Assembly (NCBI RefSeq): GCF_020745735.1
Contig: NC_083409.1
Coordinates: 10,576,978 to 10,640,977 of the forward strand
Reading direction: 5' to 3'
Length of the DNA stretch: 64,000 bases
From: Hemiscyllium ocellatum
Taxonomy: Eukaryota
Shown here: positions 10,195 to 20,700 of the stretch, piece by piece
Layout of the letters: each line of letters starts with the position of its first letter
How positions within the stretch are numbered: the stretch's first letter is position 1
Notes under the pieces: generated by a model
Database searches by the model: none
Told to the model about the DNA's origin: nothing
The model's input: only the letters and a program-made list of their open reading frames with translations
Translations under genes and position numbers: made by a program

Positions 10195-10510
10195 TGGGAA
10201 AGAAAGAGAGAGGGAGATAGAGTAAGACAGAGAGAGAAAGAGAGAGAGGGAGAGGGCCATTTGGAGAGAGAGAGTGAGAGAGAGAGAGGGAGAGAGAGAA
10301 GGACAGGGTGTGAATGAGATAGAGGTAGAGTGAGCCTGAGGAAATGTAAGATGAGCAAAAGTAGAGAGGGAGAGGGACAGAGAGTTAGAGGGAGGTAGAG
10401 ATGGTGGGGTTGAATAATAGAAACAGAGAGAAAGAGAGAGAGAGAGAATGAGATAGAGTATGAAACAGTGTGACTGAGGGAGAGGAGAGAGAGAGAGAGA
10501 AAGATGCAAA
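10195..10510. repeat. Degenerate (GA)n polypurine tract
   Basis: About 315 nt of nearly pure AG sequence on the + strand. Confidence 0.85.
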
Positions 10511-10842
10511 GTAGGTGTGAGACTAGGAGTAAAGAGAATCTAGTGAAAGAGACATTATGAGAAGAATATGACTGTACTCGAGAGGATGCAGAGATTTCCC
10601 AGGATGCTGCCTGGCCTGGAGGGTCTGAGCTGTGAGGAAGGATTGGAAAGGCTGTGTTTGTTTATCTTGGAGCAGTGAAGGTTGAAAGGGGACCTAATAA
10701 AGAGCTATAAGATTATGAGGGGCAGAGATATAGTGGACAAGAAGTCAATTTTTCCATGAGTAGAGGAATCAATACCCAGGGGCAGAGATTGAAGATATCA
10801 CAGACGTACATAGATAGAAACAGGGAGCAGGAGTAATGTTCT

Positions 10843-11665
10843 GGTTAGGGTACGGGTTAGGTTACGGGTTAGGGTTTGGGTTTGGTTAGGGTTCGGGTTA
10901 GGTTTTGGGTTAGAGTTTGGGTTAGAGTTGGGGTAGGGGTTGGGGTTGGGGTTGGGGTTGGGGTTTGGGTTTGGGTTTGGGTTGCGGTATAGGTTAGGTT
11001 TAGGGTTGGGGTTAGGGTTAGCGTTTGGGTTTGGGTTCAGGTTAGGGTTTGGGTTCGGGTTTGGGTTTGTGTTAGGGTTCGGGTTTGAGTTAGGTTTTGG
11101 GTTAGAGTTTGGGTTATGGTTGGGGTTGGGGTTGGGGTTTGGGTTTGGGTTAGGGTTAGGGTTAGGGTTACGGTTTAGGTTAGGGTATGGATTAGGGTTC
11201 GGGTTCAGGTTCGNNNNNNNNNNNNNNNNNNNNNNNNNNNNNNNNNNNNNNNNNNNNNNNNNNNNNNNNNNNNNNNNNNNNNNNNNNNNNNNNNNNNNNN
11301 NNNNNNNNNNNNNNNNNNNNNNNNNNNNNNNNNNNNNNNNNNNNNNNNNNNNNNNNNNNNNNNNNNNNNNNNNTGGGTAAGGTTTCAGGTTCAGGTTCGG
11401 GTTAGGGTTGGGTTTTGTGTTAGGGTTAGGGTTAGGGTTTGTGTTCGGGTTAGGATTAGGGTTTGGGTTTGGGTTAGGGTATGGGTTAGGGTTAGGGTTT
11501 GGAATTAGGGTTAGGGTTTGGGTTAGGGTTAGGGTTAGGGTTAGGGTTTGGGTTAGGGTACGGGTTAGGGTTCGGGTTCAGGTTCAGGTTAGGGTTGGGT
11601 TCTGGGTTATGGTTAGTGTTAGGGTTAGTGTTCGGGTTAGGATTAGGGTTTAGGTTTGGGTTTGG
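10843..11665 (+). repeat. Interstitial telomeric-type array: TTAGGG mixed with variants (TTTGGG, TTCGGG, TTGGGG, TATGGG, TACGGG, TTCAGG)
   Basis: Direct reading; the G-rich strand is + on both sides of the gap; (GGGTTA)n runs occur, e.g. near 11523-11546. Confidence 0.93.
11214..11373. other. Assembly gap (160 N) inside the telomeric array
   Basis: Run of n. Confidence 0.99.
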
Positions 11666-11785
11666 TCTTGTGAGGCTGCTCTGTCATTCAATATGATCCT
11701 GGCTGATCCTCTCCCTCAATGCCAAGGTGGGATTAGCGTTAATGACTTTTGCAAGTTGTTCAATGCTGTTCATGTCATTGAGCTT

Positions 11786-12074
11786 CTGATTGAGAGATAG
11801 AGAGACAGAAGACAGAGAGTGGGGGAGAGAGAGAGAGAGAGAGAGAGCGAGAGAACAAGTGCACATTGTGAGATTGAGTGAGAGAGGGCGAGGCATTTAG
11901 CTGCTGCCCCATGACTCAGTGTTCCAATGTTCTGGAACAACACCTGCTATAGAGATCAGTTAGAGAGTGACTGGAGGGAGAGAGACAAGGATGGAGTGAG
12001 GCAATGAGAGATTGTGGGGGCGAGTGAGGAAACAGGTAGAAAGATAAGTGATGGAGAGGAATGGATGATCAGAC

Positions 12075-12105
<31 letters not shown>

Positions 12106-12250
12106 CCAACCAATACAGAAGGAAAGGGAGATCAAAAGAAAAAGAGGGAGTAAGTCAATGAACAACAGGATTATATTCAAGAGAAAGGTGAAAAAGAGAT
12201 AGAAGGGAAAAGGGTGGGAGGAACTAGGGAAGGATGAGAGAGAGAGAGTA
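11786..12250. repeat. Degenerate (GA)n polypurine tract upstream of the V promoter
   Basis: Runs of GAGAGA at 11825-11850 and 12075-12097 in purine-rich context. Confidence 0.8.
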
Positions 12251-12254
12251 AAAA

Positions 12255-12351
12255 CAGGAAGTGTGGGGGGCTGACGTGGCTCCCTCTGCCTGATGCTATT
12301 TACATACTGAGGAACACCCAGTCAGACTCACACAGGCTGCAGCTTTATAAA
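12255..12351 (+). promoter_or_regulatory. Ig V promoter: ETS site CAGGAAGT (12255), CRE-like TGACGTGG (12272), octamer variant ATTTACAT (12298-12305), TATAAA (12346-12351)
   Basis: Motif order and spacing upstream of the leader ATG at 12412 match Ig light-chain promoters. Confidence 0.7.
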
Positions 12352-12411
12352 GCAGAGCCCAGTGAAGGGAGAGTTTATCAGGAACCAGGCACAGGGACAG
12401 GAGCACACACC

Positions 12412-12460
12412 ATGATTTCACACACCCAGCTGATCTGGCCCCTGGCATTCTGTGTCGCAG
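12412..12460 (+). pseudogene. IGKV: Ig kappa-type light-chain leader exon (MISHTQLIWPLAFCVA-G)
   Basis: ATG, hydrophobic signal peptide, phase-1 GT donor at 12461, AG acceptor at 12645-12646 in frame with V. Confidence 0.9.
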
Positions 12461-12646
12461 GTACAAATCTCTCTCCTTCCACCTTGAATCTTTAGCTGCT
12501 CTCCATTTCACTCCAATTCCACTGACTTGTGATTGAAGGGAAAATGCTGAAACCAGAGGAATGCTCAGTGTCTCCAACAATCTCTCATTTGACTGGCTCT
12601 TTCTGTGACAGTTCTGACTTCACTGTGTTCCTCTCTGACCCCTCAG

Positions 12647-12977
12647 GTATCAGTGGGGACATCATCATGACTCAGTCTCCCCCGGTGCTGTCAGTGGAAC
12701 TGGGCCAGACCGCAACCATCACCTGTAAATCCAGTCAGAGTGCCAGTGGTGATGTTGAATGGTTCCAGCAGCGGGAAGGACAGAAACCCTCTCTCCTGAT
12801 CTACAATGCTGCATCACTATTCACAGGAGTCTCAAACAGATTCACCGGGACAGAAGTGTCCAGCACACATTTCACCCTGACAATCAGCAACGTTCAGAAT
12901 GAGGATGTCGCTGATTATTACTGTCAGCAAAGTGAGAGCTTCCCTTACGTTCGGTAAAGGAACCAAACTCCGACTGA
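12647..12977 (+). pseudogene. IGKV: Pre-joined V-J exon of a kappa-type (NS4-like) light chain; junction out of frame, TAA at 12955-12957
   Basis: [31 protein letters not shown] abuts J (TTC GGT AAA GGA ACC AAA CTC CGA CTG = FGKGTKLRL) with no RSS or spacer; J frame is offset from V frame; GTAAGT donor at 12978. Confidence 0.93.
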
Positions 12978-12983
12978 GTAAGT

Positions 12984-19400: not shown

Positions 19401-20700
19401 GTCGATCCAGTCTTTCCTCATATGTCAGTCCTGCCATCCCGGGAATCAGTCTGGTGAACCTTCGCTGGATTCCCTCAATAGCAAGAATGTCCTTCCTCAG
19501 ACTAGGAGACCAAAACTGCACACAATACTCAAGGTGAGGCCTCACCAAGGCCTTGTTTAATTCTACAAGACATCCTTACTCCAATACACTGTGAAGGCCA
19601 ACATGCCATTAGCTTTCCTCACTGCCTGCTGCACCTGCATGCCCCCTTTCAATGACACCCAGCTCTCACTGCACCTCACCTTTTCCTAAACGTCCACCAT
19701 TCATTCATAATCTGTTTACCACAAAAGTGGATCATCCCACATTTACCCACATTATGTTGCACTTGCCAAGTATATGTCCACTCAGCCAGCCTGTCCAAGT
19801 CACCCTGCAGCCTCTTAGCATCCTCCTCACAACATACATTGCCACCCAGCTTCATGTCATCTGCAAGTTTGTAGGGATTGCATTCAATTCCTTTGTCCAT
19901 ATCATTTATGTGTATTGTGAACAGCTGGGGTCCCAGCACTGAACCCTGTGGTACCCCACTCATCACTGCCTGCCACTCTGAAAAGGACTCATTTATTCCA
20001 ACTCTCTGCTTTCTATCTGGCAATGAGTTCTCTCTCCATGATAATACATTACATCCAATACCATGGGGCTTAATGTAACTCACTAATCTCTTGTATGGGA
20101 CCTTGTCAAAAGCCTTTTGAAAGCCCAGATACTCACTGTCCACTGAGTTCTGAAGTAGGGTCACTCAATTCGAAACACTAACTTCGATTGCTCTCCACAG
20201 ATGCTGCCAGACCTGCTGAACTTTTTCATCATTTTTGTTGTTATCCACTGATTCAGCCTTGTCTACTCTCTACTGATCACATCCTCAAAAACTTCCAGGA
20301 GATGTGTCAGCCCTAATTTCCCTTTTGTAAATCCATGCTTATTTGGACCGATCCTGTCATTGCTTTCCAAATGCTCGGTTATTGTATCTTTAATAACTGA
20401 CTCCAGCGTTTTCCTCATGTGTAATTCCTCATTTTCACTCTCGTTCCTTTTATTAAAAAGTGGGGTTATATTGGATACTGTCTAGTCCATTGGAACTCTG
20501 TCAGTGTCGACAGAATGCTGGAAAATGATCACCAATGTGTCCACTATTTCTAGACCCACTTTCTTAAGGACTCTGGGATGCAGAACATCAGGCCCTAGCA
20601 TCAGCTTCTCCAAGACCATTTCCTGACTAACAAGGATTACCTTCAGTTCCTCCTTCACACTTGACCCTCTATCCCCTTGCATTTCCTTTCAATAGGATGT
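13430..20700 (-). mobile_element. Stack of nested, decayed CR1 LINE fragments in the cluster-1 J-C intron, including an ORF1 esterase-like piece at about 16300-17200
   Basis: Minus frames: MVCCLPGARVKDVTEWLQ (CR1 ORF1 SGNH-like), DFSKAFD, SGVPQGSVLGPQLF, LADDMKLGG, VRPHLEYCVQFWSP. Confidence 0.82.

Follow-up and report, generated by a model that had tools for sequence, protein, structure and literature searches.

The window analyzed here is a 64-kb stretch of DNA (C9:10576978-10640977). It contains a kappa-like immunoglobulin (Ig) light-chain gene on the + strand. The leader exon is at 12412..12460. It starts with the ATG, is followed by a GT donor, and is open in all sampled paralogues. A germline-joined V-J exon follows at 12647..12977. 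The V is intact and encodes a V-set domain (Pfam, 9e-18); among solved structures, antibody light chains are its best relatives. No recombination signal sequence (RSS) separates it from J, to which it is fused, and a splice donor is present after J. V and J do not share one reading frame: the shifted J (FGKGTKLRL) puts a stop just after CDR3. A putative V promoter is at 12298..12351 on the + strand. It contains an octamer-like motif, ATTTACAT, at 12298-12305 and a TATA-like motif, TTTATAAA, at 12344-12351. All sampled clusters share the region 12236-12646, with 92-97% conservation.

A degenerate interstitial telomeric array was found upstream of this gene at 10838..11660, with its G strand on the + strand. 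It is ~823 bp long and contains ~137 hexamers, 160 masked letters included. The array is ~750 bp upstream of the ATG, and the octamer-like motif is ~640 bp downstream of its end. It lies 10.6 Mb inside a 116-Mb contig. An earlier note on this DNA had reported a telomeric array inside a CR1 tail at this place. Both the array and its position inside a CR1-like tail are real.

Telomeric array

Tandem Repeats Finder retrieved two arrays with a GGTTAG consensus. The first, at 10843-11205, contained 60.7 copies with 77% matches (score 309). The second, at 11394-11662, contained 44.7 copies with 78% matches (score 282). In a unit census, TTAGGG made up about a third of the visible units. The other units were mainly the third-position variants TTTGGG, TTGGGG, and TTCGGG, plus TTCAGG, and they frequently occurred in short runs. 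Runs of three to four perfect repeats persist. All perfect TTAGGG runs of the 64-kb window are confined to the array, and clustered CCCTAA was found neither in the window nor in the paralogues. The array therefore has one orientation, as the earlier note had claimed.

The masked stretch within the array covers 11214..11373 and consists of 160 N. It is a mask of true length and not an assembly gap, since the assembly copy of the window coordinates (L001) contains no N. Window 10600-11213 maps to positions 435-1048 of paralogue L002 with 100% identity, and window 11374-11900 maps to L002 1209-1735 with 99.8% identity. Exactly 160 nt lie between the mapped parts in L002, and L003 and L006 gave the identical figure. 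The CR1 halves are 835 nt apart in the window and 835-841 nt apart in L002, L003, and L006. Because three collinear paralogues have 160 nt at the equivalent place, both sides of the N stretch are part of one continuous array, which bears out the view that they belong to one locus.

Public runs were compared over 10400-12400. Their contigs end at the repeat and so cover the junctions rather than the array or the mask. For the source organism, contigs confirm both array junctions (X5 records 27 and 28; X1 record 6, from a different sample).

Window 10600-11900 is 99.8-100% identical to L002:435-1735, array included. L002 is 5.8 Mb away in the opposite orientation. Either a segmental duplication took place very recently, or the assembly contains this segment in duplicate.

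CR1-like tail on both sides of the array

The left flank at 10560..10805 (+ strand) is a piece of the 3' region of an older LINE, belongs to the duplicated cluster unit, and is conserved beside the site in filled and empty paralogues (with and without telomeric repeats). Public contig depth was very high at 10534-10667, which marks a genomic repeat.

The end of the CR1-like LINE 3' tail is at 10806..10837 on the - strand. In reverse complement, it contains the 8-nt tail repeats, GGAGCAGGAGTA, and a decayed GG. Empty-site paralogues go on from here with GGCCATTCGGCCC. The rest of the tail is at 11661..11723, also on the - strand, and runs from the decayed ATTCGGCCCTTT through GAGGCTGCTCTGTCATTCAATATGATC. 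In alignment A1, 10806-10835 and 11672-11723 are consecutive parts of one reverse-complemented tail. Uninterrupted copies of this tail were found in the window at ~19010, 42690, 5095, and 2756 (-). Both flanks also aligned to 16 random genomic copies from five chromosomes. The earlier note had described the flanks as consecutive parts of a CR1 tail, and this description holds in the formal alignment and against the genomic copies. All 16 genomic copies end in a few 8-nt units of the ATAGACAA or ACATAGAA type. The sequence just past these units is unique, so they mark the end of the element. Across 3.98 Gb, there are 745 occurrences of the intact 22-mer that spans the insertion point and 0 of the reversed control.

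A reverse transcriptase (RT) match (RVT_1, 1.5e-10) was found at 19676-20164(-), 0.6-1.1 kb from the tail at ~19010. This is a sister copy and not a fragment of the Ig locus. The ORFs beside the tail at 42690 had no Pfam match, and RT was found only at the ~19010 copy. The 8-nt repeat tail without poly(A) and the non-LTR RT fit a CR1-type LINE, and we use the term CR1-like for it.

CR1 homology ends at ~11723 in the window's clade. Loose ends of public contigs at 11722/11724 run on as CR1 body, and in empty-site clusters the CR1 body extends for at least 300 nt beyond the point equivalent to 11723. In the filled clade, this body is replaced 63 bp downstream of the array by an AG-rich segment of ~510 nt that is unrelated to CR1. 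In the window, this spacer is at 11724..12235 (no strand assigned). It has no homology in L049-L068, except in L053, which bears telomeric repeats.

About a dozen bases had been thought to be missing between the flanks. They are present in mutated form, as graded intermediates exist on both sides in the paralogue series. Window 10836-10844 corresponds to the decayed GG plus the first telomeric repeat, and window 11661-11671 (TTTGGTCTTGT) corresponds to a decayed CR1 stretch, ATT(C)GGCCCTGT. The apparent left filler of the window, ATGTTCTGG, is explained by the steps GTAGGGTTAGG (L013), GTAGTGTTAGGG (L024, L032, and L053), and GTAATGTTCTGG (the window's clade). The right filler is explained by ATTGGCCCTGT, TTTGGCCCTGT (L053), TTTGGTGCTGT (L008), and TTTGGTCTTGT (window). 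According to this series, the original insertion lost CC only.

Filled and empty paralogous clusters

A genome search with the right flank and promoter (11666-12420) retrieved ~40 paralogous places, and 31 were fetched. All 31 contain telomeric hexamers at the identical point of the CR1 tail, with very different lengths. Array length was measured as the distance between GGAGTA and TGAGG. This distance was 25-49 nt (two to six repeats) in 22 clusters and 168 nt in L024. It was 241-402 nt in L007-L009, whose right flank is 91-92% identical to the window, and 792-991 nt in L002-L006, whose right flank is 98-99.5% identical. The least decayed filled form, found in the L013 group, reads GGAGTAGG, GTTAGG, TTTAGGG, four TTAGGG, and ATTGGCCCTGTGAG. 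The short, least decayed copies contain no extra sequence between the repeats and CR1. Array orientation tracks the cluster and not the chromosome; L002 and L005-L007 are inverted.

A further 20 clusters were fetched across the identity range of a protein search with the V exon. In 18 of them, the same left flank is present and the tail lies uninterrupted at the same distance from the V gene. It reads ...GGAGCAGCAGTA and then GGCCATTCGGCCCTTTGAG or GGCCATTCGGCCCTTTGAGTCTGCTCTGTCATTCAG... Of the remaining two, L053 contains a 93-bp array and L057 lacks the site. The comparison with empty sites that the earlier note had proposed thus covered 51 paralogous clusters. With the window, there are 52 clusters: 33 filled, 18 empty, and 1 without the site. 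Flank markers suggest ~110 empty-type units and roughly 35-40 filled units in total.

The filled sites differ from the empty sites by repeats placed between GTAGG and ATT(C)GGCCC, with CC alone gone. The insertion is precise against all 18 empty sites, which are paralogues rather than orthologues. The 3.98-Gb genome contains the junction 17-mer GCAGGAGTAGGGTTAGG at 15 places, each of them an Ig cluster, so the repeats are not a property of a CR1 subfamily.

Two other organism labels also have contigs that run across the decayed left junction and into the array, with 91-93% identity. X10 record 16 spans 10750-10856 with 8 differences, and X16 record 19 spans 10660-10851 with 17 differences and 2 gaps. 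The filled, decayed junction is therefore not private to this assembly.

A joint in organisms C and D that skips 849 was considered as an orthologous empty site. It was rejected; one of its sides is only 22-24 nt, and it is most likely a generic CR1 copy.

Origin of the insertion in one clade

A maximum-likelihood tree of the 52 clusters was built from the left flank, CR1 piece, promoter, leader, intron, and V exon. The insertion and its edges were excluded. The tree splits the 33 filled clusters from the 19 others at one branch, with SH-aLRT support of 100 on both sides, and the insertion trait changes once. The data fit a single telomeric insertion, as the filled clusters form one clade with this support; it dates to the common ancestor of roughly one-quarter of the clusters, in a family that numbers at least 150. 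The two clades may appear more sharply separated than they are if gene conversion has taken place between clusters. The original event may be more complex than a simple insertion, because the filled clade also differs by the replacement of the CR1 body from 11724. This replacement may be part of the same repair event.

Array growth and turnover

The long arrays form one nested clade within the filled clade (support 94-100). The 241-402 bp arrays are on early branches of this long-array clade, and the 792-991 bp arrays form a well-supported inner clade. Short arrays occur in both other lineages of the basal polytomy of the filled clade, so short is the parsimonious ancestral state. This argument is one of parsimony across a basal polytomy, and some short arrays could be contractions. 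The arrays of L024 and L053 are separate, smaller expansions.

Length changes occurred in blocks. L004 contains 156 bp (26 hexamers) more inside its array than its near-identical sister L003 (flank distance below 0.001). We note that this block, in L004 (G000:C10:55803-59567), is a recent block-wise length change. The window array contains traces of a block period of ~186 bp. Its top off-diagonal self-alignments, in the visible part, are at shifts of 185-187 and 372, with 86-90% identity compared with 80-84% elsewhere. When the window's right part is shifted by 186, it matches L002 over 289 nt with 89.6% identity. In gapless autocorrelation, the array gave the 6-nt period only, with no clean higher-order peak. 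This is because indels break the register, and the blocks are visible in local alignments alone.

The array of L005 is 87% identical to that of L002, with 93 gap columns, and their flanks are ~98.5% identical. The lower identity of the arrays indicates that they turn over faster than the flanks. Alignments of the L008 or L024 array to L002 are ambiguous (~83% everywhere) and give no block-by-block ancestry.

V-J joining in the neighboring genes

A protein search with the V exon retrieved at least 150 related V exons, from C9 5.7-24.3 Mb and from small contigs. The small contigs are C10-C13, C291, C375, C388, C456, C628, C694, C741, and C1873. The V exons are spaced ~30-50 kb apart, in either orientation. 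Germline joining was found in 9 of the 52 sampled clusters, with at least six different joints.

The earlier note had suggested that the array may be linked to the germline V-J joining next to it, and it had proposed a comparison of joined and split clusters. This comparison, on the 52 clusters, does not support the link. Three of the nine long-array clusters are joined (window, L002, and L006). Joined genes also occur in 3 of the 24 clusters with arrays of 25-168 bp (L012, L032, and L053) and in 3 of the 19 empty or site-less clusters (L049, L051, and L068). Joining is independent of the array, as it occurs beside long, short, and absent arrays alike.

The window, L002, and L006 share an identical out-of-frame joint, CCCTTACGTTCGG (12922-12983). 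These three form a terminal subclade (support 97-99), and the same array is also present in L003 and L004, their split sisters. The shared joint, the terminal position, and the split sisters with the array place one joining event after the expansion of the array. The joint of the three is one germline joining event followed by duplication of the pseudogene. L002 (C9, 16.37 Mb) and L006 (16.43 Mb) are both inverted, and the V of L006 has an extra frameshift.

The V exons of the split long-array clusters are open and keep the canonical Cys/Trp/YYC. No sign of inactivation was found in them.

Proposed origin and alternatives

We favor a short interstitial telomeric sequence (ITS) that originated in a single break repair, spread passively by cluster duplication, and later grew in the window's lineage. 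We give this reading a probability of about 0.8. A CR1-like LINE would have suffered a double-strand break in its 3' tail, at a point ~0.6 kb upstream of a kappa-like V gene promoter. The break would have been repaired with a few TTAGGG repeats and the loss of 2 nt (CC). The anatomy of the junction points to telomerase priming on the 3' end ...GTAGG as the most likely source of the repeats. At the left junction, TAGG, four bases in telomeric register, precedes GTTAGG. These in-register bases are suggestive only, since four bases in a single event could be chance.

The scar would then have been copied passively with each duplication of this Ig cluster, to reach ~35-40 of at least 150 clusters, and it would have stayed at two to six repeats in most filled clusters. 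In the window's lineage, it probably became an unstable minisatellite. The likely direction of change is from ~25-50 bp through 240-400 bp to 790-990 bp. Growth may have occurred by slippage or unequal exchange of blocks of ~156-186 bp, with variant hexamers accumulating. The V-J joining of the neighboring gene is a later and unrelated event. The array is most likely neutral.

This reading is in line with what is known of ITSs. They insert at breaks, where the loss ranges from 0 to a few nt and bases of the 3' end are in register (PMC7215372; related, PMC8537989). At ITS loci, the change that most often accompanies insertion is a deletion, 17% of loci show no modification, and microhomology in register is not random (PMC7215372). 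ITS amplification has been attributed to unequal crossing-over or slippage (PMC6410037). The earlier note had also read the array as a healed break that was later expanded and degenerated. Insertion at a break in the CR1 tail, expansion, and degeneration stand and are reflected in the graded lengths. The placement of the event beside this particular joined gene does not stand, because it happened in the ancestor of the clade, long before the window's V-J joint.

The repeats could instead have originated in place by a route that does not involve telomerase, with mutation of the tail motifs GTAGGC and TTCGGC and their expansion by polymerase slippage into TTAGGG-like hexamers, as in a microsatellite. 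In favor of this, TAGG and TTCGG are found in the CR1 tail at the insertion point, the array often has the variant TTCGGG, and it expands in slippage-like steps. However, no two-unit proto-repeat was found in the 18 empty paralogues or the 16 generic copies, and the least decayed filled sites hold perfect TTAGGG runs. Nor is the tail prone to this change: the intact 22-mer is found 745 times, and the 15 junction 17-mers are all at Ig clusters. The literature also sets the origin of ITSs apart from microsatellite growth (PMC7215372). We consider an origin in place unlikely. The same holds, somewhat more strongly, for a long array that is kept for a function in the locus. For example, TRF1/TRF2 might bind to such an array, with effects on transcription, RAG access, or the choice of Ig cluster. 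ITSs of ~800 bp bind TRF1/TRF2 in other systems (PMC6410037), and the array ends ~640 bp upstream of an octamer-like motif. It has kept runs of three to four perfect repeats and has been kept in nine clusters, and two other organism labels have at least its left junction. The V exons next to long arrays are still open. Against this, length and sequence turnover exceed those of the flanks, about three-quarters of the family are without the array, and most filled clusters have two to six repeats. Retention in recent duplicates is expected of neutral DNA. More specifically, expanded arrays may act as cis-regulators that recruit TRF1/TRF2 and set a light-chain subfamily apart in the timing or probability of its activation. 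Tethering to the lamina or looping to telomeres would perhaps also be conceivable. If so, the arrays would be one factor in how cartilaginous fish choose among more than 100 clusters (cluster exclusion). We regard this as a speculative and improbable extension.

The array and V-J joining could be causally tied, for instance by way of a common break or of RAG activity in germ cells. In favor of this are only their proximity in the window and the three joined genes among nine long-array clusters. Such a tie is very improbable given the one identical joint of the terminal trio, the array in split L003 and L004, and the joined genes beside short arrays and empty sites. The N stretch inside a telomeric array could also suggest a relic of chromosome fusion, a true chromosome end, or a misjoin. 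Fusion ITSs have a head-to-head (TTAGGG)n-(CCCTAA)n structure, which is absent from the window and its paralogues. The array has a single orientation that follows the cluster, also in the inverted L002 and L005-L007. The same CR1 element flanks both sides, and the locus is 10.6 Mb inside a 116-Mb contig. The assembly is without N here, and three paralogues are collinear with exactly 160 nt. A relic, end, or misjoin can practically be dismissed. The earlier note had likewise set the array apart from head-to-head fusion relics, and the single orientation, the empty sites, and the graded series of arrays in the paralogues agree with it.

Comparison with known systems

Short break-repair ITSs are known from primates, rodents, and horse (PMC7215372, PMC8537989). 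The shark insertion shares with them an internal site, one orientation, a precise insertion, a deletion of a few nt, in-register bases on the 3' side of the break, and few initial repeats. It differs in that the empty sites are paralogues within one genome and not orthologues. It also differs in that the scar was multiplied ~35-40 times by gene-cluster duplication and that one lineage reached 0.8-1 kb with block structure. Short ITSs have a limited number of hexamers. The 22 clusters with two to six repeats fall in this class, and the window copy, with ~137 hexamers in 823 bp, exceeds it. ITSs of the TERC-ITS subclass have a flank retrotranscribed from telomerase RNA; no TERC-derived flank was seen in the short, least decayed shark copies.

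Amplified or degenerate ITS blocks of heterochromatic and subtelomeric regions (PMC6410037) resemble the shark array in their variant hexamers and in growth by unequal crossing-over or slippage. Heterochromatic ITSs form pericentromeric blocks of many kb to Mb, whereas the long arrays here are 0.24-1 kb and lie within Ig gene clusters. The window array is only ~0.8 kb and is traceable to a short ITS. Its gene cluster is 10.6 Mb away from the end of the contig; it is not subtelomeric and probably not pericentromeric.

The locus is a tidy case of a known kind and not evidence of a new mechanism. As the scar was copied along with the gene cluster, its stages can be ordered, and the locus provides a time series of an ITS within one genome: empty, two to six repeats, ~100-170 bp, 240-400 bp, and 0.8-1 kb. 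It documents the block-wise growth of a short break-repair ITS into a degenerate array of kilobase scale. The insertion is a clean shared marker for subdividing a very large Ig light-chain family that is hard to assemble. The comparison also disposes of a connection between telomeric repeats and germline V-J joining that is tempting but false.

The nurse-shark NS4 clusters (type III, kappa-like; PMC2193156) are the closest described gene organization. They also contain many highly similar V-J-C units, a minority of which are germline joined, and some joined genes are pseudogenes. The family here differs in its size, with at least 150 V exons. The NS4 paper does not mention telomeric repeats (PMC2193156), and our literature search found no published reports of telomeric repeats upstream of cartilaginous-fish Ig genes. 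Among the split clusters sampled here, L061, L062, L066, and L067 contain variant RSS heptamers (TACAGTG and CACGGTG) beside a normal nonamer.
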